NCBI GenBank assembly: GCA_038087875.1
Contig: JAXLNO010005914.1
Span: 1-44,648, forward strand
Length of the DNA: 44,648 nucleotides
DNA from: Malacoraja senta
Lineage: Eukaryota
Direction: 5' to 3'
The notes under the pieces were generated by a model. It was not told the DNA's origin, did no database searches, and was given only the letters and a program-made list of their open reading frames with translations. Below, piece by piece: positions 17,818 through 44,648 of the stretch; within the stretch, counting starts at the first letter, position 1, and each line of letters starts with the position of its first letter. The translations under genes and the position numbers were made by a program.

Positions 17818-18444
17818 TTAACTCTCCTCCCAACTCCCTAAATTCTCCTTTCAGGACCTCTTCTCTCTTTCTGCCTATGTCATTGGTATCTATATGTACC
17901 ACAACCTCAGGCTCCTCTCCCTCCCATTTCAGGATATCTTGGACGCGTTTAGACACATCCATGACCCTGGCACCAGGGAGGCAAACTACCATCCGGGTCT
18001 CCTGACTGCGTCCACAGAATCGCCTATATGACCCCCTAACTATAGAGTCCCCTATTACTATTGCCCTCCTCTTCTTTTCCCTACCCTTCTGAGCAACAGG
18101 GCCGGTCTCTGTACCGGAGGCCCGGCCGCTGTCGCTACCCCCAGATAGGCTGTCCCCCCCAACCGTACTCAAACATGAGTACTTATTGTCAAGGTGTACA
18201 GCCACCGGGGTACTCACTAGTCCTTGCCTCTGCCTCTTGCCCTTCCTAACAGTGACCCACTTGTCTGCTCCCGTGGTCTTGGAGAGACCACCTCCCTATA
18301 ACTCCTCTCTATGACCTCCTCACTCTCCCTGATCAGACAGAGGTCATCGAGCTGCTGCTCCAGGTGCCTAACACGGTCCCTTAGGAGCCCCATCTGGACA
18401 CACCTGGTGCAGATGTGGACGTCTGGAGGGGTATCAGACTCCAT

Positions 18445-19982
18445 TTTAATTTTTATTTTTATTTATTTATTTATTCCGAACAAATAAAGACATTAAAGAC
18501 ATTAATATTAACAAAATCGAAATTATCAAACAATTGGACATTACAATCAATATTTACAAAGCAATGAGAAGAACAAAATCAAAGTTCCAATGTCCAACTC
18601 TGTGTCTGTACAAGCTCGAAAAGGAGTGAGAAGAAGAATAACTTATTAAATCTCACCCCTTTTCCCCAACACTTCTATCATATTTAAAAATCAATTAATT
18701 ACTAATAATAATACTATCCTAGGCAATTTCCCATAATACCTACAGACATATACATACATACAACTATTATGTACATACAAACTTCATATCTGAAGTACCC
18801 AAACATAAGTAAACAATAGCAAAGCAAGATAAACTTCACCCCCCACTTGTCAACCATCCCCTCCATCCCTGTACCCCTTGAGAATTATTTTTTTATATAT
18901 CATTTTAAAATGATTCTTGTTTGTGCATTGCTTCAATTCCCCGTTCAATTTATTCCACACTCTTACTCCACAAACCAAAATACAAAAGGTTTTTCTAGTC
19001 GTACGGACTTTTTGTTTCTTAAAGTTAAATATTCCTCTTAAATTGTAACCCCCCACACGCTCGTTAAATAATTTTTGAATGTTTCCAGGTAAATGTTTAT
19101 TTTTGGCCCTAAACATTATCTGAGCTGTTTTGAATGTGACCAAATCTTCTAATTTTAATAATTTTGACTCTAAAAATAATGGATTCGTATGACCCAGATA
19201 CTTAGCATTATGGATAATACGAATTGCTCTTTTTTGCATCATGGTTAATGAGTGTATCGAATTTTTATAATTATTACCCCAGACTTCTGCACAATAATTT
19301 AAGTAGGGTAAAATTAATGAACAATAAAGAATACGGAGTGATTTGTAATCCAGAGCTTGCTTGGCTTTGTGTAATACAGAGATACTTTTTGACAATTTTA
19401 ATTTTACATGTTTAATATGTGATTTCCAGCTTATTTTATCGTCAATTATAACCCCAAGAAATTTATTTTCATGCACTTTCAACTTCCACCCCATTTATCT
19501 TTATACTTACTAGTGTATTTATTCTACAATTACCAAATAACATTATTTTAGTTTTACTCAGATTTAATGAAATTTTATTCCTATCAAACCATATTTTCAA
19601 TTTACCCATTTCTTTTATTATTTTATCCAATAGCTGTTTTAAATTTTCCCCAGAACAAAAAACATTTGTATCATCTGCAAACAAAACCAGCCTCAAGACA
19701 TTGGACACATTACAAATATCATTTATGTACATGATAAATAATTTTGGGCCCAGCACTGACCCCTGTGGTACACCACACACAATGTCCAAGCATGCAGAAT
19801 TATGACTACCCAGATTTACAAACTGTTGCCTGTTACTTAAGTAGCTTTTAATCTAGTCCAGTACTATTCCTCTAATTCCATACCTTTCCAATTTTTTAAA
19901 TAAAATATCATGTTTAATTGTATCAAATGCTTTTTTTATGTCAATGAATATCCCAGCTGCATATAATTTCTTATCAATGGCG
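18445..19982 (-). mobile_element. 5'-truncated L2/Crack-clade LINE inserted in CR1-B ORF1
   Basis: FIDIKKAFDTI, VPQGSVLGPKLF, LFADDTNVFC motifs; 5-bp TSD TCCAT (18440-18444, 19983-19987); A-rich tail at 18445-18480. Confidence 0.88.
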
Positions 19983-20433: not shown

Positions 20434-21942
20434 AATACACCAGGTGTGGTCTCACCAGGGCCCTGTACAACTGCAGAAGGACCTCTTTGCTCCTATACTC
20501 AACTCCTCTTGTTATGAAGGCCAACAGGCCAAAACTGCACACAATACTCCAGGTGTGGTCTCACCAGGGCCCTGTACAACTGCAGAAGGACCTCTTTGCT
20601 CCTATACCCAACTCCTCTTGTTATGAAGGCCAACAGGCCAAAACTGCACACAATACTACAGGTGTGGTCTTACCAGGGCCCTGTACAACTGCAGAAGAAC
20701 CTCTTTGCTCATATACTTAACTCATCTTGTTATGAAGGCCAACAGGCCAAAACTGCACACAATACTCCAGGTGTGGTATCATCAGGGCCCTGTACAACTG
20801 CAGAAGGATGTCTTTGCTCCTATACACAACTCCTCTTGTTATGAAGGCCAACAGGCCAAAACTGCACACAATACTCCAGGTGTGGTCTCACCAGGGCCCT
20901 GTACAACTGCAGAAGGACCTCTTTGCTCCTATACTCAACTCCTCTTGTTATGAAGGCCAACAGGCCAAAACTGCACACAATACTCCAGGTGTGGTCTCAC
21001 CAGGGCCCTGTACAACTGCAGAAGGACCTCTTTGCTCCTATACATAACCCTCTTGTAATGAAGGCCAACAGGCCAAAACTGCACACAATACTCCAGGTGT
21101 GATATCATCAGGGCCCTGTACAACTGCAGAAGGACGTCTTTGCTCCTATATACAACTCCTCTTGTTATGAAGGCCAACAGGCTAAAACTGCACACAATAC
21201 TCCAGGTGTGGTCTCACCAGGGCCCTGTACAACTGCAGGACCTCTTTGCTCCTATACTCTACTCCTCTTGTTATGAAGGCCAACAGGCCAAAACTGCACA
21301 CAATACTCCAGGTGTGGTCTCACCGGGGCCCTGTACAACTGCAGAAGGACCTCTTTGCTCCTATACTAAACTCCTCTTGTTATGAAGGCCAACAGGCCAA
21401 AACTGCACACAATACTCCAGGTGTGGTCGCACCAGGGACCTGTACAACTGCAGAGGACCTCTTAGCTCCTATACTCAACTCCTCTTGTTATGAAGGCCAA
21501 CAGGCCAAAACTGCACACAATACTCCAGGTGTGGTCTCACCAGGGCCCTGTACTACTGCAGAAGGACCTCTTTGCTCCTATACTCAACTCCTCTTGTTAT
21601 GAAGGCCAACAGGCCAAATCTGTACACCATACTCCAGGTGTGGTCTCACCAGGGCCCTGTACAACTGCAGACGGACCTCTTTGCTCCTATACTCAACTCC
21701 TCTTGTTGTGAAGGCCAACAGGACAAAACTGTACACAATACTTCAGGTGTCGTCTCACCAGGGCCATGTACAACTGCAGAAGGACCTCTTTGCTCCTATA
21801 CAAAATGTAAAGCACTTTGGCCAACGAGAGTTGTTTTTTTAAATGAGCTATATAAATAAATGTGACTTGACTTGACTTGATACTCAACTCCTATTGTTAT
21901 GAAGGCCAACAGACCAAAACTGCACACCATACTCCAGGTGTG
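20434..21942 (-). repeat. Tandem array of a 109-bp unit derived from CR1 ORF2 (at least 13 units, runs into a gap)
   Basis: GAAGGCCAAC recurs at 20516, 20625, 20734, 20843, 20952, 21060, 21169, 21275, 21384, 21492, 21601, 21710 and 21901. The unit encodes [34 protein letters not shown] on minus. Confidence 0.95.
21801..21879 (+). mobile_element. ~80-bp L2-type 3' tail inserted into one array unit
   Basis: TGTAAAGCACTTTG...CTATATAAATAAATG(TGACT)n interrupts the unit at CCTATA|CTCAAC. Confidence 0.7.
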
Positions 21943-22290: not shown

Positions 22291-22914
22291 GGTCAGCCAT
22301 GGTTGCAAGGCGGAGTGGACTCGGTAAGTTGGCGATATGCAGAGAACTGCCCTGCTGACTACAAATTCAGAAAGGTCCAATGCAGACAATGCCAAGTGTG
22401 GGCTAGCAGGAGTGAAATGGGCCGATGGGCCTTTTCAGGATGCTCCAGGCTCCCCGCATCCACCTCGTTGTCCCGCAAGGTCGGCTTGGTGACTTTGGGG
22501 GAATTATTGGTGGCAAATGGTTTGGAAATGAGACAGAACCCGGCCTGCAGGGCCACATTAAGTGTGGATATAGTGTGAGTTATAAAGTGTGGGGAACCGC
22601 CTGCGAGCGCCTGTGCATGCTCCCCCTGCTGCATTATAGGGAATGCATGCATCACTGGCTGCATTGCTGCCTCCCCCGCTGCATGGTAGCGCTTTTATCT
22701 TTACCTGCTCTTCACAGCTGCATTCCCGAGGCGCTTCCGGCGGGATGTGGGACGCTTTAGGGCGGCGCACCGGGGCTGGCAAAGCAGGACGGCGGGTCTC
22801 AGGCGTCCGGGGTGGAGGGCGAAACGCCGAATGTTTGTTCCGGGGTGGTTTTGTTGTTGGTTTTTTGGTGCATTGAGGGTCGGGTGGAGAGGAAAAAGGA
22901 GGGGGGTAACGAAG

Positions 22915-29335: not shown

Positions 29336-29546
29336 TTTCCACTGAGGTCACTCTCGCTGCCCGCCCTGATGATCATTCAGTCCTGTACTGCACTGTGTTT
29401 GGATTTTACCCACCGGCCATCAATGTCAGCTGGTTGCAGAATGGTCAACATGTCTCTGAGACGAAATCTTCTGGGGTCATACCCAACAACGATGGAACAT
29501 ATCATCTAAGGTCTGTCCTTGAGTATGATCCGTATGATGGGAAACA
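29336..29546 (+). pseudogene. MHC class I alpha3-like C1-set Ig exon, 5' part
   Basis: (V)STEVTLAARPDDHSVLYCTVFGFYPPAINVSWLQNGQHVSETKSSGVIPNNDGTYHLRSVLEYDPYDGK: C-x3-GFYP, W, PNxDGTY. The expected acceptor reads GTAA (29332-29335) rather than AG. Confidence 0.88.
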
Positions 29547-32500
29547 CCTAAGGTACTGGAAGAGAGAAGTTGGGAGACGGTGAGAAAGGGAGGGAAGCAT
29601 GGAATGCCAACGTCCCCGGGTGTTGTGCCTCTTGTGAACAGGTTCACCCACTTAGAAGCTGTTGGGACAGAAGACGTGTTTACACTGAGCGGCGGACTGG
29701 TTTGCGATGCGAATAGGGCTGTTGAGCCAAAACCAAAAAGGCCTAAGGCAGGCAACGCCATTGTAGTGGGAGACTCCATTGTGAGAGGTACGGACAGGGG
29801 TTTCTGTGGCAACAGACGGGATGCGAGGATGGTGTGCTGCCTTCCTGGTGCCAGGATCCAGGATGTCACGGACAGAGTGCAGAAAATCCTCAAGGGCGAA
29901 GGTGAACATCCGGAAGTGGTAGTGCATGTCGGCACAAACGATGTCGGAAAGAAGGGGATGAATATTCTGCAGCGTGACTTTAGAGAGCTCGGAAAAATGC
30001 TGAAAAGCAGGACCTCCAGGGTTGTTATCTCCGGTTTGCTTCCAGTTCCTCGTGCTGGCGAGAGCAGGAACAGGGAGATACGGGACCTGAACGTGTGGCT
30101 CAGGAACTGGTGCACGGGGCAGGGATTTAGATTCTTAGATCACTGGGATCTGTTTTGGGGTAAGGGGGAACTGTACAAAAGGGACGGATTGCATCTTAAC
30201 AGGTGTGGGACCAGCATTCTGGCAGGCAGGTTTGCCACTGCTACACGGGTGGTTTTAAACTGAATAAGGGGGGTGGGGTGTCGAATGGGATAGTGGAGGA
30301 TGGAGTTAAAGGGAAAGGGTTTCTTAAATGTGTGAGCGTAGAGACAGAGGAGTGAAAAATGAGGTAGCAAGGTGAAAAGTAAAAGTGGAAGACAGACAAA
30401 ACCAGGGCAAAAATCAAAAAGGGCCACTTTTCAACATAATTGTATAAGGGGTAAGAGTGTTGTAAAAACAAGCCTGAAGGCTTTGTGTCTCAATGCAAGG
30501 AACATTCGTAATAAGGTGGATGAGTTGAATGTGCAGATAGCTATTAATGACTATGATATAGTTGGGATCACGGAGACATGGCTCCAGGGTGACCAAGGCT
30601 GGGAGCTGAACATCCAGGGATATTCAATATTCAGGAGGGATAGAGAGAAAGGAAAAGGAGGTGGGGTAGCATTGATGATTAGAGAGGAGATTAACGCAAT
30701 GGAAAGGAAGGACATTAGGTTCGAAGATGTGGAATCGGTATGGGTAGAGCTGCGAAACACTAAGGGGCAGAAAACGCTGGTGGGTGTTGTGTACAGGCCA
30801 CCTAACAGTAGTAGTGAAGTTGGAGATGGTATCAAACAGGAAATTAGAAATGCGTGCGACAAAGGCAAAACAGTTATAATGGGTGACTTCAATCTACATA
30901 TAGATTGGGTGAATCAAATTGGCAGGGGTGCTGAGGAAGAGGATTTCTTGGAATGTATGCGGGATAGTTATCTAAATCAACATGTAGAGGAACCAACGAG
31001 AGAGCAGGCTATTTTAGACTGGGTATTGAGTAATGAGGAAGGGTTAGTTAGCAGTCTTGTTGTACGTGCCCCCTTGGGCAAGAGTGACCATAATATGGTT
31101 GAGTTCTTCATTAGGATGGAGAGTGACATTGTTAATTCAGAAACAATGGTTCTGAACTTAAAGAAAGGTAACTTTGAGGGTATGAGACATGAATTGGCCA
31201 TGATTGACTGGCAATTAATTCTAAAAGGGTTGACGGTGGACATGCAATGGAAGACATTTAATGACTGCATGGATGAACTACAAAAATTGTTCATCCCAGT
31301 TTGGCAAAAGAATAAATCAGGGAAGGTAGTACATCCGTGGATAACAAGGGAAATCAGGGATGGTATCAAAGCGAAAGATGATGCGTACAAATTAGCCAGA
31401 AAAAGCAGCATACCAGAGGACTGGGAAAATTCAGAGAAAGGCAGAGGAGGACAAAGGGCTTAATTAGGAAAGGAAAAATAGATTATGAAAGAAAACTGGC
31501 AGGGAACATAAAAACTGACTGCAAATGTTTTTATAAATATGTAAAAAGAAAGAGATTAGTTAAAACAAATGTAGGTCCCTTGCAGTCAGAAACAGGTGAG
31601 TTGATCATGGGGAACAAGGATATGGCGGACCAATTGAATAACTACTTTGGTTCCGTCTTCACTAAGGAAGACATAAATAATCTGCCGGAAATAGCAGGGG
31701 AACGCGGGTCAAAGGAGTTGGAGGAATTGAGTGAAATCCAGGTTAGTCGGGAAGTGGTTTTGGGTAAATTGAATGGATTAAAGGCCGATAAATCCCCAGG
31801 GCCAGATAGGCTGCATCCCAGAGTACTTAAGGAAGTAGCTCCAGAAATAGCGGATGCATTAGTAATAATCTTTCAAAATTCTTTAGATTCTGGAGTAGTT
31901 CCTGAGGATTGGCGGGTAGCAAACGTAACCCCACTTTTTAAGAAGGGAGGGAGAGAGAAAACGGGGAATTACAGACCAGTTAGTCTAACATCGGTAGTGG
32001 GGAAACTGCTAGAGTCAGTTATTAAAGATGGGATAGCAGCACATTTGGAAAGTGGTGAAATCATTGGACAAAGTCAGCATGGATTTACGAAAGGTAAATC
32101 ATGTCTGACGAATCTTATAGAATTTTTCGAGGATGTAACTAGTAGCGTGGATAGGGGAGAACCAGTGGATGTGGTGTATCTGGACTTCCAGAAGGCTTTC
32201 GACAAGGTCCCACATAAGAGATTAGTATACAAACTTAAAGCACATGGCATTGGGGGTTCAGTATTGATGTGGATAGAGAACTGGCTGGCAAACAGGAAGC
32301 AAAGAGTAGGAGTAAACGGGTCCTTTTCACAATGGCAGGCAGTGACTAGTGGGGTACCGCAAGGCTCAGTGCTGGGACCCCAGCTATTTACAATATGTAT
32401 TAATGACCTGGATGAGGGAATTGAAGGCAATATCTCCAAGTTTGCGGATGACACTAAGCTGGGGGGCAGTGTTAGCTGTGAGGAGGATGCTAGGAGACTG

Positions 32501-33373
32501 CAAGGTGACTTGGATAGGCTGGGTGAGTGGGCAAATGTTTGGCAGATGCAGTATAATGTGGATAAATGTGAGGTTATCCATTTTGGTGGCAAAAACAGGA
32601 AAGCAGACTATTTTCTAAATGGTGGCCGACTAGGAAAAGGGGAGATGCAGCGAGACCTGGGTGTCATGGTACACCAGTCATTGAAAGTAGGCATGCAGGT
32701 GCAGCAGGCAGTGAAGAAAGCGAATGGTATGTTAGCTTTCATAGCAAAAGGATTTGAGTATAGGAGCAGGGAGGTTCGAGTGCAGTTGTACAGGGTCTTG
32801 GTGAGACCACAACTGGAGTATTGCGTACAGTTTTGGTCTCCAAATCTGAGGAAGGACATTATTGCCATAGAGGGAGTGCAGAGAAGGTTCACCAGACTGA
32901 TTCCTGGGATGTCAGGACTGTCTTATGAAGAAAGACTGGATAGACTTGGTTTATACTCTCTAGAATTTAGGAGATTGAGAGGGGATCTTATAGAAACGTA
33001 CAAAATTCTTAAGGAGTTGGACAGGCTAGATGCAGGAAGATTGCTCCCGATGTTGGGGAAGTCCAGGACAAGGGGTCACAGCTTAAGGATAAGGGGGAAA
33101 TCCTTTAAAACCGAGATGAGAAGAACTTTTTTCACACAGAGAGTGGTGAATCTCTGGAACTCTCTGCCACAGAGAGTAGTCGAGGCCAGTTCATTGGCTA
33201 TATTTAAGAGGGAGCTAGATGTGGCCCTTGTGGCTAAAGGGATCAGAGGGTATGGAGAGAAGGCAGGTACGGGATACTGAGTTGGATGATCAGCCATGAT
33301 CATATTGAATGGCGGTGCAGGCTCGAAGGGCCGAATGGCCTACTCCTGCACCTAATTTCTATTTCTATGTTTC
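29547..33373 (+). mobile_element. Young 5'-truncated CR1 (CR1-D): partial ORF1, ORF2 with one internal frameshift
   Basis: ORF1 esterase open to 30263. ORF2 30372-33280 is broken by a 1-nt frameshift at ~31425-31429, plus a 13-nt deletion just after the presumed ATG relative to CR1-A. (TTTCTATG)n tail; 14-bp TSD TATGATGGGAAACA (29533-29546, 33374-33387). Confidence 0.97.
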
Positions 33374-33387
33374 TATGATGGGAAACA

Positions 33388-33443
33388 GTATTCCTGTCAT
33401 GTCGATCACAGCAGCCTGCCCGGTGGGAAGACCATCATCTGGG
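33388..33443 (+). pseudogene. MHC class I alpha3-like C1-set exon, 3' part
   Basis: QYSCHVDHSSLPGGKTIIW followed by G|GTAAGA donor. Joined exon is 267 nt, phase 1-1. Confidence 0.9.
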
Positions 33444-33759
33444 GTAAGAACATTAAATATTCATTCATAGATAATCATTACCTTCTGTTGTATCCATTTT
33501 AATCATCGTGACTACATCGCATATTCCAAGATGCTTAAACTTTCTTTGTTTAGTGGTGTTGCTCTAAGCAATCACGTAATCAGCACCCACTCTCCACATG
33601 AGCAGAAGACTTTGTCAACAGAAAATTTATCAAAAGTAAATAAATAACTAATATACAAGGAAGGAGTATTTGAGATTCTCAGTGCTGGAACTGAAATCCA
33701 TGAAAGGTATGTTTAAATAAAAAATGAATCTTTCCTCATGATGTGATTAACAGCAAGGC

Positions 33760-34492
33760 ACTGGGGGAGTACATGCCCCAATCCAAATCAATGGTCCGAA
33801 GTGGAAATGATTGAGAGCTTCATGTTCCTTGGCATGAATATATCCAATATTCGGTCATGGACTGGCCACATAGCCAAGGAGGCACACCAACATCTCTACT
33901 TCCTCAGGAGACTGAGAATATTCATCATGTCTCTGGTGACTCTAGCAAACATCTATAGATGCTGCCAGAGAACGCATGTTGTTGGGTTGCATCACATCTT
34001 GATTTGGGAACTGCACTGCTCAAGACTGCAAGAATATACAAAGAGTTAAAGATCATCACACAGGCCAGACTTCCCACTATTGATTCAGTCACACCAGGTT
34101 GCCTTGGAAAACGAGACTTATCCCACCCCGGTCATTCCTCTTTCCTGCTCCCATCAGGCAATAGGTACAGAAAGTTGAAAGTATACACTGCCAGACCCCC
34201 TTTCCATCTGTTAACAGGCTTTAACCCCCTTTCCATCTGTTAACAGGCTTCGGAAGGGTCCTTCCATAATGTAGGTTTAATGCCAGATTTACCTCAACCT
34301 CATTGCACATTGAACATTGTCTATGGAACTGATGCGTTACAATGTTGAGAACGATATTCTGTACTCTGTATCCTCCTCTTTGCTCTATCTATTGTTTTTG
34401 AGTTTGTATTTATGTATAGTTTTATAATTTGTTTGGATAGCATACAAAACAAACCTTTGCTCTGTATTTTGAAACATCTGGCATTAATAAAA
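33760..34492 (+). mobile_element. Degraded Rex1/Babar-type LINE 3' portion
   Basis: ESFMFLGMNIS...QHLYFLRRLR...LANIYRC; 3' AATAAAA at ~34486. Confidence 0.75.
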
Positions 34493-34917
34493 CAAAACCT
34501 AATGAAGTAAGTTCCCTGACGCAAGTTACAGATTCAGCAACAACAAATATAGCTGCCTGACAAACAGCGATCGTAATAGTTTGAATCCAGGTATGCTGCA
34601 CTAACCTAGACAAATGCTCACTTTTGAAGATTCCCTCGAACAATGCAAAACTAAGGAATCTGATATTTCACTCTGAAGACTGTTGACATACTCCAGAACT
34701 TAATTTCCAACCTATCTATGTATCATCAGCAATCTAGGCTACAGCGCCATCAGTCCCTTCATCTGCTCTTAATACCAACGATAAGTAGTTCACTTTCTTG
34801 CATTGATTCCCAACCCGCTGTTGCAGTTTCCCAACCTGAACACTCCTTTAAGACAACTCTCTGCTTGCTCTTAATTGTTTCTTCCATTCATGCTAATTAT
34901 TACCCCCAATGTCATAA

Positions 34918-35259
34918 GGAAGTGGCGGCGCTGTTCAACAGCAGCGGCTCGCCTGCAGTCCATCTGTTTTTACGTTTTTTGTTGTTTTCCTTTGTCCTGT
35001 TTTAGTTAAATTTCAGTTTATTGGGTTGTGTACGTGTGGTGTGGGGTGGAGTGGGGGGGTGAAACATGATTTTTGTCTCTTCCTTCGGGGGAATGCGACT
35101 TTTGTCGTAGCCCCCTTCTCTGCCTCCATCTGCGCTGAGGCCTAATGGCGGAGCTGCCGGCCACCAACTCCAACTGCGACCGACCGACCTGGAGGCTCCG
35201 GAGGCAGAGCCAGGACTTACCAGCGCGGGGCTGGCCTGCTTCGGGGCTGCGGTGGCGTG
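34918..35259 (+). mobile_element. GC-rich element 5' part, related to 16970-17817, replacing the start of an Ig exon
   Basis: Starts GGAAGTGGCGGCG; shares GCCTGCAGTCC + T-run architecture (34951-34961 vs 17020-17030). Confidence 0.55.
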
Positions 35260-35503
35260 GGCAGTGACATCACCCTCAGCTGTACCATCTCCAGACTGCC
35301 AGATACCATCAGTCTTCACTGGAAACCAAGAGGCTCATCTCAGCAGAACAGGAGGAACAGCACTGATCAGATCCGTCAGAATAACGCCATCTATCTGATG
35401 GTCCAACACATTGGAGCAGGAAATCCCATTCTGTACACATGGGAAGTGCAGGAAAATGGCTCCATTGTTCTCACTGGAGACACCAATGTCGAAGTGGATC
35501 AGG
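35260..35503 (+). pseudogene. C2-type Ig exon (5' end lost or displaced), CD4/LAG-3-like family
   Basis: GSDITLSCTISRLPDTISLHWKP...LYTWEVQENGSIVLTGDTNVEVDQ. B-strand Cys and C-strand Trp present; F-strand YxC reads YTW. Perfect G|GTGAGT donor, phase 1. Confidence 0.75.
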
Positions 35504-35824
35504 GTGAGTCCAAAGCTGCCTTGCAGCAGGTATTAAATAGTTCTTGATATCAAACTGTTCCACATGTTGTATAGTGAGCACTGACTCCACCCGTGGGCTT
35601 CCACACTGTAGGATGTGGACATTGCCTTTACGCTGGAACATGGTGGAAATATAAAATGGTGGCACTAGGATTGATGGAGCCACACAGGAGAACCAAGAGA
35701 TTCATTTCAATTCACCTGAATGAATCAAAGGGGATAATATCCAGTGATGGAAATAACATCTAGTTTTCAGTGTATAACAGAACAGGAAAATATGAACTAA
35801 TTCATGAATAAATGCAGAGGTAAT

Positions 35825-36520
35825 ATCAGAATCAGAATCAGAATCACATTTTATTGGCCACGTAATCATACACAAGGAACTTGACAGTGCTTTGCTCGCA
35901 TGTGGTAAAAACATGATATACAGCAGACAATTAAAAATAAAACATTATAATTTAAACATGTGAAAATAAAGTACCGGAGATAAAAGAGGCTACCGACTTT
36001 TGGCTGTTGAGTAGAGCTACGGTTCGTGGGAAGAAGTTGTTTTTATGTCTGGATATGGCAGCTTTGACAGTCAGGACTCACCTGCCAGAGGGAAGTGATT
36101 CAAAGAGTTTGTGGCCAGGGTGAGAAGGGTCACAGATGATCTTACCCGCTTGCTTCCTGGCCCTTGCAGTGTACAGTTCATCTATGGAGGGAAGGTTGCA
36201 GCCAATAACCTTCTCAGCTGATCGGACGATTCGCTGCAGCCTCCAGGTGTCGTGCTTGGTGGCTGACCATGACCATGATGGAGAACGTGAGGACAGACTC
36301 TATGATGGTAGTGTAAAATTGGACCATCATTGCCTGTGGCAGGTTGTGTTTGCTCAGCTGCCGCAGGGAGTACATCCTCTGTTGGGACTTTTTGACTGTG
36401 GAGTCGATGGTGGCCTCCCATTTAAGTCGCTGGAGATGATGATTCCGAAGAAATTAAATGACTCCACAGTTGTGACTGTGGTGTTGTTGAAGAAAAGTGG
36501 GAGGAGGGGAGGGGGAGCTC
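35825..36520 (-). mobile_element. Rex1/Babar-type LINE 3' portion with (TTCTGA)n tail
   Basis: RMYFLRQLSKHNLPQAMMVQFYTTIIESVLTFSI-type frame; tail at 35825-35848. Confidence 0.75.
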
Positions 36521-36594
36521 TACAATCAGGAGGGGAGGATTGAGTCTACAATCAATTCCACTGTCTTAAGAGCACTGAGCTTCAGGTTGTTGCA

Positions 36595-37035
36595 ATGCCA
36601 ACAGGACACAAGCTTTATGATTAGGGTGACTTGGACATCGTGCTGAAGTAAGCATGCAGGTACAGCAGGCAATGGAGAAAGCAAATGGCATGTTGGCCTT
36701 CATAGCGAGATGATTTAAGTATAGGAGCAAAGAGATCCTACTGCATTTGTACGGGGCCCTGATGAGACAACACCTGGAGTATTGTGTGCAGTTTTGGTCT
36801 CTTAGTTTGAGAAAGTACATTCTTGCTATCGAGGGAGTGCATCATAGGTTCACCAGGTTAATTCCTGGAATAGCGGACTGACATATAATGAAAGAATGGA
36901 TCGACTGGGTTTATATTCACTGAAATTTAGAAGGATGAGAGGGTATCTTATAGAACCGCGTAAAATTAATAAGGGATTGGGCAGGCTAGATGCAGGAAAA
37001 ATGTTCCCCATATTGGGCGAATCCAGAACCAGGGT
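36595..37035 (+). mobile_element. CR1 ORF2 C-terminal fragment
   Basis: [15 protein letters not shown]...LGLYSLKFRRMRG motifs. Confidence 0.85.
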
Positions 37036-37143
37036 TCCCAGCTGACATCCCAGAGCCGGGGGGTTTTCCCTGTGGAAACTCACAACATTGTATCTCGGCG
37101 TGTGTGAAAATCTAATTCTTTGTTCCCTGTCCCGCTCTTGCAG

Positions 37144-37479
37144 GTTTACACAAGACGTACACAGTTTATCGCTCAGTCACAGATCACAGTGAACTCGACC
37201 TGATTTGTGAAGCTTCTCCTGAGCTCAGTGAAACCAAATGGACTTGGAGATCACAACGTTTCCAGAATCAAGAGAAGGAAATAGCTTCTTCTCACAGGTC
37301 TGAGCCGATACATGTCGACAGGAGCTACTTTGGGAATCAGCTGGAAACCATAGAGGGAAATGTGAATGGCAAGAATTTCCATGTGAGGATTGTCCCCGTG
37401 CAGTTTGCAGATGCTGGAGTTTACACATGTTCCACAGGATCAAATATATATGTGAACATTGAACTAATCACAGTTACAG
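37144..37479 (+). CDS. Intact V-set Ig exon (CD4/LAG-3-like family)
   Basis: Pyrimidine tract + CAG acceptor; 336 nt open: (G)LHKTYTVYRSVTDHSELDLICEASPELSETKWTWRSQ...KNFHVRIVPVQFADAGVYTCSTGSNIYVNIELITVT; G|GTAGAA donor; D-x-G-x-Y-x-C motif. Not captured in frame by the ORF track. Confidence 0.88.
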
Positions 37480-38284
37480 GTAGAAGACTGGATGTTACTA
37501 CTTTCAAGAATTAAGAATTAAGTGTAGAGTTTCTAATCTGAGTACAGACTGCAATGTCAGCAGAAATTCCCAAGTTTTAAGAGTTATTTTACCTACAGAG
37601 CTTCCTCTTCAACTTATTTGTATTTTGCTGAACCCAAAATCTGCCTTAAACCAACATTATTGGGAAGCACATTAAATGTTATTTTCATTTATTTGGTTGA
37701 AAACACATTGTTTTATACGTAAGAGAGGGAATATGATGAAATGTGATTCACAAAGGTGCAAATGAGCTTCTATCGAAAATATTTTTAAAATCATTCAACT
37801 TCTCTTAACACATTCCCCAAGCTTCTTTGACCCCAAACGACCCATCCTAATTTTGAAGGCTCACTGGAGGCTTAAAACTGAGTGTATTTTGTGGAATTTA
37901 TCGATTAATATTTACCTGGATGAGTGTTGTGGCCAAAACTGGCCAAAGACAATGATGTGGGCATTGGTTGCTCTTTGAATAATTAGTTCAAAAGTGGTGT
38001 GAATGATTATGGAAAAGACACTTGGAAAGGCACATGGATGGGAAAGGTGCAGAGGGATATGGGCCAAATGTGGGAACATATTTTAGATGGAGCATCTCGG
38101 GCGGCATGGATAAGTTGGGCTGAATGGACCGAATTGTTTCATGCTGTATGACTATGCCTCTAACTCTTGTTGTGTAATATAATTTTTCACACTTAGAACG
38201 CTAGATACTGGTGTCAATGTACTGAGAAAAATACAACACATTCCAGACAAAATTCATTGTTTTATGATTTTCTTCTTTCCACAG

Positions 38285-38554
38285 TTACAACTGAACCATC
38301 TGGCGCAGTGACTGAGGGAAGAAAGATTACCCTGACCTGCTCTGTGTCTCATGTCACTGAGTCAATGAGACTGGTTTGGATCAATGATGAAGGCAAAGTT
38401 GTAGAGGAGAAAAATCTCATGCAAACAAAGCAGGAGGACAATTCTTTGCAGCTGCTTATTGCAATAGCTGATGCAGTAAGAAGGAAATGGACACGTGGTT
38501 TGTTTCATCAAAGCACAGCCAAGGTTTTCATTCCATATAATCTGCAGGTGAACA
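38285..38554 (+). CDS. C2-type Ig exon with a WxC-type F strand (Cys to Arg), CD4/LAG-3-like family
   Basis: TTCTTTCCACAG acceptor; 270 nt: (V)TTEPSGAVTEGRKITLTCSVSHVTESMRLVWIN...RKWTRGLFHQSTAKVFIPYNLQVN; A|GTAAGT donor. Confidence 0.85.
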
Positions 38555-39171
38555 GTAAGTTTCTAAGCTTCTGCTCTTCGTTATCTCGACACAGAGTTCT
38601 TGTCACGTTGCTATTCTTTTTGGATAACTTTTAACATTCCATGTCTTACTGCAAGTAGAGCTCAATCATAGACATTTCCTTCAAACATCTTGTCCATGCC
38701 TATAAGGTCACTTCTATTGTAAGTAGTCCAGGTCAATGAAGCACATGGGAGCACATGGATCACTACTGCTGACAGACCACTGACCAAGACCTGTGTTGGC
38801 CATCTCATTGAAGGTGATCGGGAATTTTGTCATCAATGTCTGTCCTTGTTGATAAGTGTCTCCACAGGTATGAAAAGTGGTCCAGTAGTATGAAAACCAG
38901 TGTGTCACTGTCAACCTTTTTGTCAGAGGTCAGTATAGTAAGGTGGGCAGCTTGGTGGAAGATCTTTGCCATAACACCCAAACTGTGCCCCTTAAAGATA
39001 ACACTGTGCCCCTTAAAATCATCTTGAAAATAGTTGTACAAGTTTCATTCCCCTGTTCTGATGCTGTAAAACATTACAGCGGTTGAAGCATCCACAGTAA
39101 CTTCACCAAAGGCTGCCACGTGAGAACAGAAGATGTGGGGGAGGGAATACTGATGTCTTCACCTTGTCTGA

Positions 39172-39468
39172 CCATGATGGCGCACTGGTAGGGTTGCTGC
39201 CTTACAGCGACAGGGACCCGGGTTCAATCCTGACTACAGGTGCTGTCTGTATGGAGTTTGTTTCTTCATCCCGTGCCCTGCGTGGGTTTTCTCCAGGATT
39301 TCCGGTTTTCTCCCAAATTCCAAAGATGTACAAGTCTTGGTTTGGCTTGGTGTAATTGTATGTTGTCCCTGGTGTGTGTAGGATAGTGTTAGTCTGTGGG
39401 AATCGCTGGTTGGCGTGGACCCGGCGAGCCGAAGGGCCTGTATCCGCGCTGTATCTCTAAACTAAATT
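39172..39468 (+). mobile_element. Full V-SINE (HE1-like)
   Basis: A-box, B-box GGTTCAATCC, V core, tail GCCGAAGGGCCTGTATCCGCGCTGTATCTCTAAACTAAA. Confidence 0.88.
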
Positions 39469-40242
39469 GAACACAATCCCAACATTCCTCCCAATCCCAC
39501 CCATCCATTAATCCCTGCCCTTCATGTGGTCCCAAGCCTCAGTGAAAGACATTTTGTACAATGCTGACAGAAGGCAAAGCACTGATCCCTAACAGAGGAA
39601 GATGCTGTAAACACCCAGGCACAAAGGAACAAGCGCCACCACATATAGATCAATGAAGAGTCAGTGAAGCACAAAGTGGAAAGTATCAATGTCCCAACAG
39701 GAACACTTTAATTCCTCACAGATAATCACATCATCCAGTCATAGAATTGTGGAATGGTTGTCGCACAGAAGGTGTCCATTTGACCCATCATATCCATGCT
39801 AACTCTCATCCAGAGCAAATCGCTAATTCTACCCCCTCTCCTTTTGCCATCACATTGCAGCTTTTTCATCGCTATATATTTGTCCAATTCTCTCTGGAAA
39901 GCCACGATAGAACCCAGCTCCCCAACTGATGCAGACAGTACACTTCAGACTCCAACTACCTGCTGCCCAAAAAGATTTTCCTCAAGTCATTCTAAAATGT
40001 TTCCCCTTTATTTTAAACCAATACCATTTTGTGCTCAGCCTTTCCACTGAAGGGAGCATCCTTCCACAATCCATTCTGTTCAGACTGAATAAATAATGCA
40101 TAAATGAACAATGCTGCCATTGATGTGATGAAAGAGCATTATTGACTCTTGTCTTCAAACTCTCTCTTCAGTGTGCCATGGGAATAACTGTACAGAGAAC
40201 AGCCATAAATAGAATCTCAATTATACCAACCATGTTTACTGT

Positions 40243-40557
40243 TTAGTTTAGTTTAGAGATACAGCGCGGAAACAGGCCCTTCGGCCCACCGGGTCCACGT
40301 CAACCAGCGATCCCCGCATATTAACACTATCCTACACCCACTAGGGACAATTTTGTACATTTACCAAGCCAATTAACCTACAAACCTCTACGTCTTTGGA
40401 GTGTGGAAGGAAACCGAGGTTCTCGGAGAAAACCCATGCAGGTCCCGGAGAGAAAGTACAAACTCCGTACAGACAGCACCCGTAGTCGGGATCGAGCCCG
40501 GGTCTCCGGCGCTGCATTCACTGTAAGGCAGCAACTCTACCGCTGCGCCACCGTGCC
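40243..40557 (-). mobile_element. Full V-SINE (HE1-like) with (CTAAA)n tail
   Basis: A-box TGGCGCAGCGG, degenerate B-box, V core, CR1-like tail. Confidence 0.9.
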
Positions 40558-40627
40558 GCATTCATTGTGTCATCTCTTTGTAACATGTTTACAGTTTGAC
40601 TTGCAGATTCAACTGCTTCAATGCACC

Positions 40628-40985
40628 ATCTCCATCAGTACCGCTACAGTGTGCCCCTCCATCAGTACCACCACAGTGTGTCACTCCATCAGTACCACAG
40701 TGTGTCACACCATCAGTACCACCACGGTGTGTCTCTCCATCAGTACCACCACATTGTGTCACTCCATCAGTACCACCACAGTGTGTCCCTCCATCAGTAC
40801 CACCACAGTGTGTCACACCATCAGTACCACCACAGTGTGTCCCTCCACCAGTACCACCACAGTGTGTCACTCCATCAGTACCACCACAGTGTGTCACTCC
40901 ATCAGTACCACACAGTGTGTCCCTGCGTCAGTTCTGCCCCATTTTTATCCCTCCATCAGTACTTTCTCACTGTGTCCCTCCATCA
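40628..40985. repeat. 27-bp minisatellite (CTCCATCAGTACCACCACAGTGTGTCA), ~11-12 copies with 24-bp variants
   Basis: Tandem units read directly; 9-aa periodicity in the ORF track. Confidence 0.92.
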
Positions 40986-41801
40986 GTGGGCGGAGAGAGG
41001 GCAGCCCAGAGAGGGGGAATAGAGAGCGTAGGAGAGGGAGTAACAGTTCAGAGAGTGTGACAGCAGTAAGGATGGAGGGAGAGAGAAAGAGAGGAGGGAG
41101 AGGTGCTGGATCATTCGCTGTTTTATTTAGGTTTAGGACAATTCTGAGGCGGCAATGTTTCTGTTCTCTGAGTGTCCTGAGTCTTTGGGTCGTTCCTCCA
41201 CAGAGGTGATGAAGGAAGGCAGAGAATGTTATTGTCCCATGGTATAGTCAGATATATTCCAGGCAAGCAGGGAGTGAATGGTTCCCGGGGTCAGTCAGCG
41301 GGAGTGTGGGGTTGAGGTCACAGTCAGTGAAGCCGCGATCATATTGAGTGGTGAAGCAGAGTGGAGGGGGGGGGGCATTTTAGTCTGAGGTGATGTGTTG
41401 AACTAATTCCTCAACCTGTGGACAAAGGTCGCCCAGTCCAGTCCACCTTCAAACTGGGCACCAGATGCCCTGAGAGGGTCCCTGGAATTTGGCATTGCCT
41501 TGCTGAGTGAAACGGATTGAAGGAAATCAGACAAACAACATGAGGTGGAGAGTTGGATCTGATGGAGTTTGAAACAATATCCCCTTTGCGGGAACAATGG
41601 CGCCGCTCCCAATTTCCATCCGTCAGGATCTATCGCCACAATTCCCAGTTTTTGGAGTTTCTCAATCAATTCCCTGAATAAATCACAACCTGTCTCAGCA
41701 GGGATTTCACTGGGCTGATGTCATCTGTTTGTGAATCATTTCTAAATCTCTATTTTTAAAATCTGTTGAAACTTCACTGTTCCGGCGGAGACGGAAAATG
41801 G

Positions 41802-41808
41802 TATAAAA
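41802..41808 (+). promoter_or_regulatory. Candidate TATA box of the GPCR gene
   Basis: TATAAAA 80 nt upstream of the ATG; an in-frame stop lies upstream of that ATG. Confidence 0.45.
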
Positions 41809-41887
41809 TCTCCAGGAATGTTCTGCCTCAGCATTTCATTGCAAGACATTACCGGTAGCTCACGGGGACACGTCGCTGGGCAGAGAA

Positions 41888-41963
41888 ATGGGGGGAAAGC
41901 TGCGGGAATATTTCGACGTGGAGAAAATCCTGTACGTGATCATTGCTGCCGTTGGAGTCCCTG
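41888..41963 (+). CDS. GPR139-like orphan class A GPCR, coding exon 1 (N-terminus, start of TM1)
   Basis: MGGKLREYFDVEKILYVIIAAVGVP + G|GTAAGT; 76 nt, phase 1. Confidence 0.85.
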
Positions 41964-42646
41964 GTAAGTGAGTGAGCAGAACAATTCAAGTTTTATAACT
42001 CCATCCGTATGTTAACTGGTGTTGACCCGATTCTCATCATGTTACAAGTTCCCAACTGATGATCGTTGTACAAGAATATGTGAAGAATATCAATCCTCTC
42101 AGTGAAATATTTGTGAATTAACGCTATGCTTTTTCTTATTTTCAGACAGCTGAAACTAACCCTCTTTTTCTCTCACTGCTGCCGGCCGGGAGCCACTAGA
42201 ATGTTGTTCTTGCCTTCAGTGGGACTTTGCCCAGAGATGTCCCAGTGCTCGGGACAGGCAGGCAGGCAGGCAGCTCTCCGGGACGGTGTGACTGGGAGAG
42301 AGGGGTTCACATTGTGAAGTTCACTGTGTCTGAGTTATTGATCAGAGTGAACACCCGCTCCCTGTGGACACTGTGTCTCACTGTGGAGTCTGTCTGTCAC
42401 AGTCGGATTCCACCCACCGCCTGTTGGTCAATAATAGGATCGATCTCCTGGACCAGTGGCCGCGGATCTACCGGCGTGTGTGTGTGTGTTGTTACTTCAC
42501 CTGCACCATCTTGAGTCTGCTGAGATTAGCCGCTGTATGTCTAAACTAACCCGACTAACTCCCCCCCCTGTCTCTGTGCTTTGGTACATATATCCCACAC
42601 CATCCATACATGGGTATAATAGGTTGCATTCCTGGCACCGTCTGGA

Positions 42647-42843
42647 TTTCGTGTGTGGGAAAGAACTGCCGATGCTGGTTTAAATCGAAGATAGACACAA
42701 AGTGCTGTAGCAACTCAGCGGGACGGGCAGCATCTCTGGAGAGAAGGAATGGGTAACGTTTCGGATCAAGACCCTTCTTCAGTCCCATTCCTTCTCTCCA
42801 GAGATGCAGCCTGTCCCGCTGAGTTACTCCGCTTTCTGCGTCG
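42647..42843. mobile_element. Palindromic Penelope-derived mini-element with a 10-bp TSD
   Basis: TSD ACCGTCTGGA (42637-42646, 42844-42853); inverted arms; hammerhead core in the loop on minus. Confidence 0.8.
42751..42786 (-). ncRNA. Minimal type I hammerhead ribozyme core
   Basis: CTGAAGA-A-GGGT[CTTG]ATCC-GAAA-CG-TT-ACCC; stem II includes a G-U pair; stem I is weak. Confidence 0.55.
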
Positions 42844-43016
42844 ACCGTCTGGACCAGAAGGGGTGGACTCTCTCTCCCGCTTTGCAACAATTGGCCTCTG
42901 CTTCAGGAGGGAAGTGTGAAGGGCACCTTGTGTGGGCAGGGAGAGAAATAGGAATATCAGGGATATCGGATATGGCGGCCATTGTAGTGCATTCTCCCCC
43001 CAGCTTTACCTTTACC

Positions 43017-43270
43017 TTTAGAAAGGAGATGAGGAGGAATTTCTTTAGACAGAGGGTGGTGAATCTGTGGAATTCATTGCCGCAGACGGGGTTGGAGGCC
43101 AAGTCAATGGATACTTTTAAGGCGGAGAGTGATAGATTCTTGATTAGTGCGGGTGTCGGGGGGTTACGGGGAGAAGGCAAGAGAATGGGGTTGAGAGGGA
43201 AATATAGATCGGCCATGATTGAATGGCGGAATAGACATGATGGGCCGAATGTCCTAATTCTGCTCCTATG
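43017..43270 (+). mobile_element. CR1 3'-end fragment (GPCR intron)
   Basis: RKEMRRNFFRQRVVNLWNSLP and CR1 3'UTR. Confidence 0.85.
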
Positions 43271-43287
43271 AGCTGCACTCTTGTGTA

Positions 43288-43491
43288 AAGTGTTTAAGAA
43301 GGAACTGCAGATGCTGGAAAATCGAAGATAGACAATGCTGGAGAAACTCAGCGGATGAGGCACCATCTATGGAGTGAAGGAAATAGGTAACTATTTGTAG
43401 TCTGAAGAAGGGTTTCGGCCCGAAACGTTACCTGTTTCCTTCGTTCCATAGATGCTGCCTCACCCGCTGAGTTTCTCCAGCACTTTTGTCT
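43288..43491. mobile_element. Palindromic Penelope-derived mini-element with an 11-bp TSD
   Basis: TSD ACTCTTGTGTA (43277-43287, 43492-43502); ~65-bp inverted arms enclosing a hammerhead core. Confidence 0.85.
43399..43432 (+). ncRNA. Minimal type I hammerhead ribozyme core
   Basis: AGT-CTGAAGA-A-GGGT[TTCG]GCCC-GAAA-CG-TT-ACC. Conserved boxes intact; stem III reduced to the palindrome AACGTT; stem I only 2 bp. Confidence 0.65.
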
Positions 43492-43644
43492 ACTCTTGTG
43501 TAGTCCTTTCTGAATAATTTCCCTTATCTGTGCTGAATGCTAACCTGGTTCTGGAAGGGTAGAGTTTGGGGATAATGCAATAGATGAAGTAGTTTGCATC
43601 AAGAAGCCATTGGGATAACCTCAGTGGAAGCTTGAGAGTGATGA

Positions 43645-43860
43645 ATGGTGAGTGTGGAATTCTCTGTCTCAGAGGGCGGTGGAGACAGGTTCTCTGGATG
43701 CTTTCAAAAGAGAGTAGATAGGGCTCTTAAAAATAGCGGAGTCAGGGGATATGGGGAGAAGGCAGGAACGGGGTACTGATTGGGGATGATCAGCCATGAT
43801 CACATTGAATGGCGGTGCTGGCTCGAAGGGCCAAATGACCTCCTCCTGCACCTGTTGTCT
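43645..43860 (+). mobile_element. CR1 3'-end fragment (GPCR intron)
   Basis: Matches the CR1-C-type 3'UTR. Confidence 0.85.
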
Positions 43861-44336
43861 ACTGAACTCACTGTGGAATGAATCCATTAACTGAGCCACT
43901 CTGCTGCCGGATTCCATGTTGTCCCTGCCTTCCCTCTGGAAGCCTCCCTCCTCGTCCCCATCAGATGCCGTGTTCCCAGAGCCCTGGTTAAACGCGGCCG
44001 GCCGCTCACGGTTAAGTCTGTGAAAGCGGCCCCATCACAGACTGTGAGCAGCAGCAGGGTTCACTATAGAAAGGACCATTGCGCCTATTGTAGCGGGTGG
44101 GTGGCTGCTCGTTCCCTCCCCGCCCTTTACCCCACCCGCCCGTCACCTTATCCCTTCTCCCCTGAAGCAGGCAGGCAGGTCGGGCACAGTCGGAGCCGGC
44201 TCTGACATTGTTAAACTTGCAGCAGCCGCGCACCGACTACAACGCTCCTGATCTTGAGCTGAAAGTCGAGCCGCTGTTCAGCCCCGGAGACCGTGTTGAG
44301 TAAATGCCCAGTGTCCGTTCCCTTGTCTTTCCGCAG

Positions 44337-44648
44337 TGAATTTAGTGGCGATCGTGATCCTGTCCCGGGGAAAGTGCGGCCTCTCCACCTGCACCACTCG
44401 CTACCTGGTGGCCATGGCAGCGGCTGATCTACTGGTCCTCATCACCGAGGTCATTTTGTATCAGATCCGATTACATTACTTTTATTGGAGTTTCCTGGCC
44501 ATCACCCCTGTGTGCAGTGTTAACGGTGTACTGGCAACTGCAGCTGCAGACTATTCTGTCTGGTTCACCGTCACTTTCACCTTTGATCGCTTTGTCGCCA
44601 TTTGTTGCCAGAAGCTGAAAACTAAATATTGCACCGGGAAAACTGCGG
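44337..44648 (+). CDS. GPR139-like orphan class A GPCR, coding exon 2 (TM1 end to TM3/ICL2; runs off the window)
   Basis: CTTGTCTTTCCGCAG acceptor; open frame (V)NLVAIVILSRGKCGLSTCTTRYLVAMAAADLLVLITEVIL...TPVCSV...DYSVWFTVTFTFDRFVAICCQKLKTKYCTGKTA. TM1 N, TM2 AxxD and TM3 DRF motifs; phase matches exon 1. Missed by the ORF track. Confidence 0.93.

Follow-up and report, generated by a model that had tools for sequence, protein, structure and literature searches.

Two adjacent immunoglobulin-superfamily gene fragments, one MHC class I alpha3-type and one from a chondrichthyan receptor family, in Malacoraja senta DNA

A stretch of 44,648 nucleotides from Malacoraja senta (contig JAXLNO010005914.1, referred to here as the window) was found to carry two gene fragments on the same strand that very probably are unrelated and non-functional and do not make up a hybrid receptor; their adjacency, in a repeat-rich region, is most likely accidental. 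A previous sequence-only reading had recognised four immunoglobulin-superfamily exons on one strand, and all four are present, on the plus strand. The first fragment would be an orphan alpha3 exon that derives from an MHC class I gene of non-classical type and is split by a recently inserted CR1-like LINE. The second would be a partial receptor-gene copy, comprising a D2 remnant, D3, D4 and approximately 2 kb of the following intron. The alternative offered by the earlier reading, that less than 2 kb separates an MHC class I-like locus from one that resembles CD4/LAG-3, holds as a description, except that both are fragments and not loci. Their adjacency provided no evidence for a primordial immune complex, the relevance that had been proposed for it.

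The receptor fragment belongs to a chondrichthyan gene family

The exons that had been read as C2-V-C2 are D2 to D4 of a large shark and ray receptor family. A phmmer search with D3 returned 58 relatives (best E = 1.7e-120), and the 23 matches with E values of 1e-10 or below defined a chondrichthyan family whose records all read "uncharacterized", save for automatically assigned names of the type "obscurin-like" or "VCAM1-like". Examples at NCBI are Leucoraja erinacea LOC129701493/95/96, Amblyraja radiata LOC116978604 and Rhinoraja longicauda LOC144591061. Members have four or eight Ig domains and are encoded by multicopy, clustered genes of 8-40 kb. Intact members have the order leader-D1-D2-D3-D4-TM, followed by an ITIM tail, or are short-tailed with a lysine in the TM. 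In every relative D2, D3 and D4 were contiguous and were preceded by the leader and D1. Tblastn searches with family proteins matched the three exons in the window at E = 1e-20 to 1e-62, far beyond chance, and across D2-D4 the window copy was 76-91% identical to intact genes in protein and 86-92% in DNA, introns included. It also shared their exon order, their phases and the subfamily-specific YTW motif in D2.

The D2 (C2-type) remnant occupies 35258-35503 on the plus strand, as determined by tblastn and DNA alignment, and ends at a GTGAGT donor at 35504. It was 82-87% identical to P0133, P0103 and P0126 by tblastn, and its F strand reads YTW (TGG at 35440), the same as in the intact subfamily. 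When aligned with the D2 exons of intact orthologues and paralogues it lacked its acceptor and the 31 nt at its 5' end; every paralogue alignment began abruptly within the exon, at 35258-35260. The D2-D3 intron contains repeat insertions (35742-37040; LINE tails and others) that had blastn matches to LINE copies elsewhere in the window and in the family loci and very high depth in all runs. D3 (V-set; 37144-37479, plus strand) is a phase 1-1 exon of 336 nt flanked by AG and GT, and D4 (C2-type; 38285-38554, plus strand) is an exon of 270 nt flanked by AG and GTAAGT; the splice sites of both are intact, and both sizes agree with those given before. D3 matched the Pfam V-set profile (E = 2.8e-07) and was 91% identical to L. 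erinacea P0108, and D4 was 76% identical to P0126 by tblastn.

Homology to intact paralogues, introns included, extended from 35258 to approximately 40555. Its last part, a remnant of the D4-TM intron (38555-40555, plus strand; blastn), was 86-88% identical to positions 21379-28995 of L001, an intact L. erinacea gene, and ended 2 kb past D4, some 2.5 kb before the position of the TM exon in L001. In contrast to intact genes, the window copy has no leader, D1, TM or tail: family proteins and C-termini gave no tblastn match to these exons in the window at E values up to 10, and hydrophobicity scans found no TM segment 3' of D4. At 37338 the family-invariant Arg of D3 has become Gln (CAG), and at 38494 Arg (CGT) stands in place of the F-strand Cys of the D4 WxC motif, a residue that 44 family members share without exception. 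The copy was truncated at both ends, probably during the duplication or rearrangement that brought part of a family gene to its present site, and it has since drifted almost neutrally; dN/dS was 0.87, and identity was about the same in exons as in introns. Decay has been slight, since the three exons are stop-free and four of the five internal splice sites are kept. The view that the copy is pseudogenised is supported.

We consider it very unlikely that D2-D4 are part of an active family gene, with its other exons beyond the window or in masked stretches and the class I exon inside a long intron. Family genes are long enough for such an arrangement, the three exons have open frames and for the most part good splice sites, and contigs from RNA runs covered them at 95-99% identity. 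However, homology to intact genes starts within the D2 exon instead of in the upstream intron and stops before the TM position, two invariant residues are lost, and a rhodopsin-type receptor ORF occupies the same strand from 44300. Those contigs that are spliced, furthermore, come from another copy, since their sequence departs from that of the window where the V exon begins; the RNA contigs may derive from paralogues or from other species.

The MHC class I-type exon is interrupted by a LINE

The 5' part of the C1 exon lies at 29336-29546 and the 3' part at 33388-33443, both on the plus strand. After removal of the LINE they form an exon of 267 nt that ends with YSCHVDHSSLPGGKTIIW, in phase 1, before a GTAAGA donor at 33444; this length and this donor had been predicted correctly. 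The same was true of the domain type, MHC class I alpha3 (C1-set). Pfam C1-set was matched with E = 1.2e-14, the best solved-structure match was 9ch4_A residues 183-249 (E = 1.6e-21, about 52% identity), which scored above MR1, CD1 and classical class I, the next matches, and class II was absent among the best 60 solved-structure matches. The elasmobranch non-classical class I lineages include UDA, UEA, UFA and UGA (Verissimo et al. 2023, PMC10751288); in comparison with such genes, the window has the alpha3 exon only, split by the LINE and without an AG acceptor.

The LINE is a CR1-like element of 3.8 kb (29547-33373, plus strand) that encodes an ORF1 esterase, an endonuclease and a reverse transcriptase, as seen from the Pfam matches Lipase_GDSL_2 (8e-13), Exo_endo_phos (5.6e-12) and RVT_1 (1.7e-33). 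It is flanked by a perfect 14-bp target-site duplication, TATGATGGGAAACA, at 29533-29546 and 33374-33387, and is 95-97% identical to copies in L. erinacea loci. The long ORFs and the perfect duplication indicate that the insertion is young. The empty site was found in X6, a DNA-like run from a close relative in which the C1 exon is uninterrupted; the sequence of this uninterrupted exon has a 22-nt loose end identical to window positions 29511-29532.

The position of the C1 acceptor, 29334-35, reads AA instead of AG, and no other in-frame phase-1 AG acceptor was found, so that the alpha3 exon would have no usable splice acceptor. In Pfam scans of stop-free stretches of 46 aa or more, which short or broken remnants could escape, no alpha1 or alpha2 was seen within 7 kb upstream. 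No partner TM was found within 11 kb downstream, to 44300, and none of 30 plus-strand ORF pieces up- and downstream had an MHC_I match or a TM segment. The rhodopsin-type ORF that begins at 44300 shares its strand with the receptor exons.

These absences, together with the AA at the acceptor, argue against the reading that other individuals or sister species retain a functional class I gene here, with its other exons at a distance and the young LINE a null insertion that may be polymorphic. The empty site in X6 and the recent date of the insertion are in favour of such a gene, as is an RNA contig that uses the 33443 donor. Small RNA runs contained words nearly identical to those of C1 (in X3, 56% of the words sampled), so that somewhere either a gene that includes this alpha3 exon or one closely paralogous to it is expressed. 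C1 words were also found in RNA run X1 and in runs from many related organisms; the words in the RNA runs may derive from paralogues. On balance we regard a functional class I gene of this kind as unlikely, although it deserves some weight, and in individuals that do not carry the LINE the C1 locus might remain active, together with exons further away.

The two fragments are not joined

Much of the 1.8-kb interval that follows the C1 donor is LINE debris, in keeping with the previous estimate of about half. Stop-free pieces at 33747-34240 (plus strand) probably represent the C-terminal part of a LINE reverse transcriptase; their single Pfam match, ALKBH8_N, is presumably LINE-derived. A GC-rich multicopy repeat at 34929-35257 lies directly against the receptor fragment at its 5' breakpoint. 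Its depth in X6 was approximately 30-45 times the single-copy level, it was elevated in RNA runs, and it had no homology to the intact family loci and no Rfam match. No TM-like or MHC-like piece was found in the interval, and no coding piece resembling a leader or promoter, consistent with the earlier statement that it holds no convincing TM, leader or promoter.

A genuine chimera, in which a class I-type C1 domain, placed membrane-distally, is spliced to a CD4/LAG-3-like D2-D3-D4 stalk and which may be dead in this copy only, was largely refuted and is now exceedingly improbable. The proposal had rested on all exons being phase 1 and splicing in frame. The exons do share one strand, C1 ends in phase 1 at its donor, and both D3 and D4 are phase 1-1; in-frame cryptic AGs occur at 35195, 35204 and 35210. 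X6 has single-copy depth throughout the stretch with these exons, and the same arrangement is thus probably present in a related genome. However, in-frame splicing fails at the C1 acceptor and at D2, which has neither its own acceptor nor its first 31 nt, and the cryptic AGs upstream of D2 are weak, with poor pyrimidine tracts (content 0.40-0.50). There is also no leader before C1 and no TM after D4.

The intact paralogues gave the same answer: no C1-like exon was present in approximately 240 kb of intact family loci (L001-L005), and the relatives carry their own leader and D1 directly before D2, as expected if the C2-V-C2 exons belong to a separate gene. RNA-run contigs covered 33374-33443 and stopped or diverged exactly at the C1 donor; one continued for 95 nt that matched nowhere in 33300-38700, which means that it splices C1 elsewhere. 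Among the contigs of four runs, which can show presence and not absence, some joined D2 to D3 and none joined the C1 donor (33443) to the D2-D4 exons. The two fragments would therefore yield no joint product.

The receptor family resembles CD4 and LAG-3 in fold and architecture

Paired Ig receptors such as KIR, LILR, SIRP and the teleost NITR/LITR form multigene clusters with ITIM-bearing and short, charged-TM forms and frequent pseudogene fragments. By analogy, the present family may comprise paired inhibitory and activating immune receptors. The analogy is a functional one and no homology is claimed, since domain types and fold differ, the present family forming a V-C2-V-C2 rod.

An AF2 model of the ectodomain of the closest intact relative (pLDDT 80.9) was compared with known structures using Foldseek. 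The best PDB matches were LAG-3 and CD4, over the whole length, and the first 17 Swiss-Prot matches were all CD4 or LAG-3, suggesting that this ectodomain folds most like these two receptors. As in CD4 and LAG-3, the model has long continuous strands bridging D1-D2 and D3-D4, and the intact relatives have a V-C2-V-C2 ectodomain with WxC in D4. D1 is encoded by a single exon, as has been reported of CD4 and LAG-3 in sharks (Takizawa et al. 2023, PMC10768021). That study describes a single intact CD4 in the catshark, along with a gene for LAG-3, whereas the present family consists of many copies in clusters. Its D2 carries YxC or YTW where CD4 and LAG-3 have WxC, and its tails have the ITIM-type motifs IHYxxI and VIYAQI, or there is a TM lysine, instead of the Cx(C/H) of CD4 or the (F/Y)xxL(D/E) of LAG-3. 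Since the tails and the D2 motif differ, the family does not belong to CD4/LAG-3; the description of these exons as CD4/LAG-3-like is upheld for fold and architecture and not for family membership. In profile searches with the family, LAG-3 was matched at 1e-06 and PD-L1 at 6e-10, with CD4 outside the best 60 matches, a result that at the sequence level hints only faintly at kinship with CD4 and LAG-3.

Four Ig-type exons on the forward strand

The four stop-free Ig-type exons that the sequence-only reading had claimed on the forward strand were present between 29336 and 38554, with boundaries set by pattern search. The C1 exon (267 nt) was found in two parts, at 29336-29546 and 33388-33443, with AA at the acceptor position and a GTAAGA donor at 33444. 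The homologous part of the first C2 exon (D2), at 35258-35503 (246 nt), is without an acceptor and has a GTGAGT donor. It is followed by the V exon (D3) at 37144-37479 (336 nt; AG and GT) and by the last C2 exon (D4) at 38285-38554 (270 nt; AG and GTAAGT). A fusion of the first of these exons to the other three, if true, would be a new immune-receptor architecture bearing on the origin of MHC and coreceptor genes.

The C1 exon is of class I alpha3 type and is interrupted by a LINE

The C1 exon was identified as C1-set by Pfam (E = 1.2e-14), and its top matches among PDB sequences were class I-like heavy chains, with Ig constant domains and SIRP further down. The best match was 9ch4_A, a 268-residue chain, over residues 183-249 (E = 1.6e-21, approximately 52% identity), after which MR1, CD1 and classical class I were ranked; class II chains were absent from the best 60 PDB matches. 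These results assign the exon to the class I alpha3 type and bear out its earlier description as MHC class I alpha3-like, that is, a membrane-proximal C1-set domain closest to class I alpha3. 9ch4_A might be UFA or UGA, a guess that carries no weight in the analysis. In the ESM Atlas, the V exon and C1 led only to generic V-set and C1-set clusters, which did not discriminate further.

The exon is interrupted by a 3,827-bp element at 29547-33373. The 14-bp sequence TATGATGGGAAACA stands without mismatch on both sides of this element (29533-46 and 33374-87), as a target-site duplication. Since the element codes for a GDSL-esterase ORF1 and for an endonuclease and reverse transcriptase (ORF2), as detected by Pfam, it was classified as a CR1-like LINE. 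The insertion is young, as judged from its 95-97% identity to copies within Leucoraja erinacea loci and from its long open reading frames (238, 366 and 632 codons). In X6, a DNA-like run of a close relative, a contig reaches 33374 and its preceding 22 nt are those of window positions 29511-29532; this contig represents the empty, LINE-free site. The phase-1 acceptor position of the exon (29334-35) reads AA and no other in-frame phase-1 AG was found before the upstream stop; the donor GT is intact.

No partner exons were detected for this domain. At E values up to 1, MHC_I (alpha1/alpha2) was matched by none of the 20 forward-strand stop-free pieces at 22.4-29.3 kb, a search that short or broken remnants could escape, and by none of ten pieces downstream of C1. 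Hydrophobicity scans of 33444-35257 and 38554-44300 revealed no credible hydrophobic stretch for a connecting-peptide/transmembrane (TM) exon, and there was no Pfam match to such an exon downstream of alpha3. To the extent that these searches can tell, alpha3 is an orphan exon.

Words nearly identical to C1 occurred in small RNA runs, and the runs of many related organisms had them as well. In one RNA contig, the 33443 donor is used and is followed by 95 nt that are absent from 33300-38700. Taken together, these observations indicate that a gene with a near-identical alpha3 exon is expressed somewhere. Its source could be either the C1 locus itself in LINE-free individuals or a paralogue.

The receptor exons are a truncated copy of a multigene receptor

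Comparison by blastn with intact loci of L. erinacea and A. radiata showed that the exons and introns of the window copy are 86-92% identical to those of the intact genes; at the protein level, the window exons are 76-91% identical to annotated family members. All of the alignments begin at 35258-35260 and the last ends at approximately 40555. Intact D2 exons open with cag/TTGAGGCAGACTCACCGAGGCCAGTAATG ahead of GGCAGTGAC; in the window, unrelated GC-rich sequence stands in that place and the D2 exon is without its first 31 nt. Only weak cryptic AGs lie upstream of the D2 remnant. The GC-rich sequence at this 5' breakpoint (34929-35257) is multicopy, at 30-45 times single-copy depth in X6, and a search of 33444-35300 against Rfam gave no match, so the repeat is not a known RNA family. 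It is well represented in the RNA runs and has no copy elsewhere in the window.

Leader, D1, TM and tail exons were not found anywhere in the window at E values up to 10; in L001, one of the intact paralogous loci, the TM exon lies approximately 2.5 kb past the point where the window homology stops. A tandem repeat of 27 bp (13.4 copies, 40630-40987) is located just after the end of homology and may mark the 3' breakpoint of the receptor fragment.

Changes within the coding sequence were also observed. Six of the 66 columns that show at least 90% conservation across 44 family members are altered in the window, and two of these are invariant in the family: in D3, Gln (CAG at 37338) replaces Arg, and in the D4 F strand, Arg (CGT at 38494) replaces Cys, so that the window D4 reads WTR where the family D4 has WxC. 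The D2 F-strand Cys to Trp change was rejected as a pseudogene lesion, since YTW is common to the intact members P0133, P0126, P0108, P0115 and P0004. When the window exons were compared with those of L001, dN/dS was 0.87, and identity was 91-93% in exons versus 89-91% in introns. The dN/dS value and the nearly equal exon and intron identities fit neutral drift; immune receptors that evolve fast could, however, give a similar picture.

The two parts do not form one gene

In the intact loci, the receptor exons are preceded by exons of their own; in L002, these are a leader at 10001-10087 and D1 at 11587-11931, ahead of D2 at 22623-22895. No C1-like exon was found in the approximately 240 kb of L001-L005 at E values up to 1. 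Two runs, X1 and X2, behave as RNA, since they have zero depth in unique introns and contain D2-to-D3 joints; the joints derive from a slightly different copy. No joint from 33443 to any place in 33300-38700 was present in the run contigs. The proposal that one gene fuses C1 to C2-V-C2 is not supported: the intact genes use their own leader and D1, the sampled loci hold no C1 exon, and the contigs show no joint from C1 to these exons. The sequence-only reading had named two observations that would separate the parts, namely receptor exons in a gene with its own leader and V exon, and a C1 exon always spliced to its own TM exon. The first is what the intact loci show; for the second, it was found only that C1 is spliced to something other than D2-D4.

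The chimeric receptor is absent, and the window carries two dead fragments that adjoin each other among many repeats. Both are of an ordinary kind, a class I exon killed by a LINE and a truncated pseudogene, and they add a further case of how rapidly, in a skate genome, class I-like genes and genes for CD4/LAG-3-shaped receptors arise and die. They also illustrate how Ig exons that share a strand and have compatible phases can, where repeats abound, look like a chimeric gene.

The adjacency might be more than an accident, with skate class I-type genes and CD4/LAG-3-shaped paired receptors interspersed in one MHC-linked region of which the window is a decayed sample. If true, such interspersion would represent an old linkage of MHC-type ligand genes with coreceptor-shaped receptor genes. 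We consider this linkage very improbable; approximately 240 kb of the main family cluster is without a class I exon.

A large chondrichthyan receptor family

When searched singly against PDB sequences, the three receptor exons matched nothing significantly, neither CD4 nor LAG-3. With the V exon as query, exhaustive phmmer searching recovered 58 proteins (23 at ≤1e-10); the top match reached 1.7e-120 and aligned in five stretches. These relatives belong to sharks, rays and chimaeras, and their database name is 'uncharacterized protein'. A wider search gave 116 members, whose LOC numbers follow one another in runs within each species. No published name was found for the family, and its LOC numbers are absent from the supplement of Verissimo et al. 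The closest relatives are skate genes: L. erinacea P0108 (V exon, 91%) and P0126 (82/81/76%), Rhinoraja P0115 and Amblyraja P0133 (D2, 87%). The L. erinacea family loci are located at CM054017.1:15.4-16.0 Mb.

In tblastn comparisons, the three exon types were always contiguous in family proteins and in the order seen in the window, and the D2-D3-D4 block was repeated in members with 8 and 16 domains. Full-length four-domain members consist of a leader, D1 (V-like, without the Cys pair), D2, D3 (V), D4 (with WxC) and a TM segment. Their C-termini take two forms, either a long tail with IHY(G/A)xI and (V/I)IYAQI or a short tail after a lysine-containing TM segment. Long ITIM-type tails in some members and short tails with a lysine TM in others are classically the mark of paired receptors, one form inhibitory and the other activating, and from their motifs we infer that the two forms may reflect paired signalling of this kind. 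Two ITIM-type tyrosine motifs are present on the long tails of P0063 and P0007, whereas P0061, P0065, P0126 and P0133 have the short tail and lysine TM. This large, old, CD4/LAG-3-shaped family with apparently paired forms is of more interest than the fragment in the window.

In L. erinacea, the annotated isoform P0108 has '...LITVTGR' as its C-terminus, its D3 donor being read through into the intron, and at 37473-37511 the window V-exon ORF likewise continues past its end (...LITVTGRRLDV...). The P0108 read-through is either a real soluble isoform or an annotation artefact.

Comparison with CD4 and LAG-3

The ectodomain of P0133, the closest intact relative (residues 28-440), was modelled with 44 family sequences, giving a mean pLDDT of 80.9 and a pTM of 0.77. 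In the model, the D1-D2 and D3-D4 junctions are bridged by long continuous strands. Foldseek searches of the PDB were led by LAG-3 (8dgg, 7tzg) and CD4 (7t0r, 7t0o, 1wio), and in Swiss-Prot every one of the first 17 matches was to CD4 or LAG-3, along the whole length. TM-scores were low (0.3-0.4), as is expected of flexible four-domain rods. When a profile of the family was searched against the PDB, LAG-3 was reached at 1.3e-06, none of its individual stretches passing, and PD-L1 at 6e-10; CD4 was outside the best 60 matches. By its model, intact P0133 is predicted to resemble CD4 and LAG-3 in its V-C2-V-C2 ectodomain and fold; the window holds a partial D2, D3 and D4.

CD4 and LAG-3 are recognised by their tail motifs, by WxC in both D2 and D4 and by genomic position, LAG-3 and CD4 lying head-to-tail in the MHC-paralogous region; the cytoplasmic motif is Cx(C/H) in CD4 and (F/Y)xxL(D/E) in LAG-3 (Takizawa et al. 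2023, PMC10768021). Unlike these proteins, family members have WxC in D4 only, with YxC or YTW in D2, and their tails either bear IHY(G/A)xI and (V/I)IYAQI or, after a lysine TM, are short; the window is without a tail exon. By the tail-motif and WxC criteria of that study, the family is neither CD4 nor LAG-3. The label 'CD4/LAG-3-like' in the sequence-only reading therefore holds for architecture, as supported by the V-C2-V-C2 fold and the Foldseek matches, and fails for membership, given the tails and the D2 motif. The family and CD4/LAG-3 share a shape and, perhaps, a distant common origin. Possession of a D1 intron was discarded as a criterion because shark CD4 and LAG-3 are without one.

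Repeat content and other features of the window

The window consists mostly of repeats, with CR1-like LINEs in several copies, satellites and masked stretches of N. Further LINE copies, at 5372-9150 (forward strand) and 14199-19852 (reverse strand), retain long open frames for esterase, endonuclease and reverse transcriptase, and some of these copies belong to other families. The region is dominated by active or recently active retrotransposons. A satellite at 20434-21801 has a 109-bp unit in 12.6 copies (93% matches), and its units share 84-88% identity with a portion of the CR1-like LINE 3' region found elsewhere in the window; from this identity, the satellite looks like a LINE tail amplified as a tandem array. 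At 44300-44647, a forward-strand ORF that matches the rhodopsin-family seven-transmembrane domain (Pfam 7tm_1, 1.3e-08) runs off the end of the window. It probably represents the beginning of a single-exon GPCR gene that shares its strand with the Ig exons.
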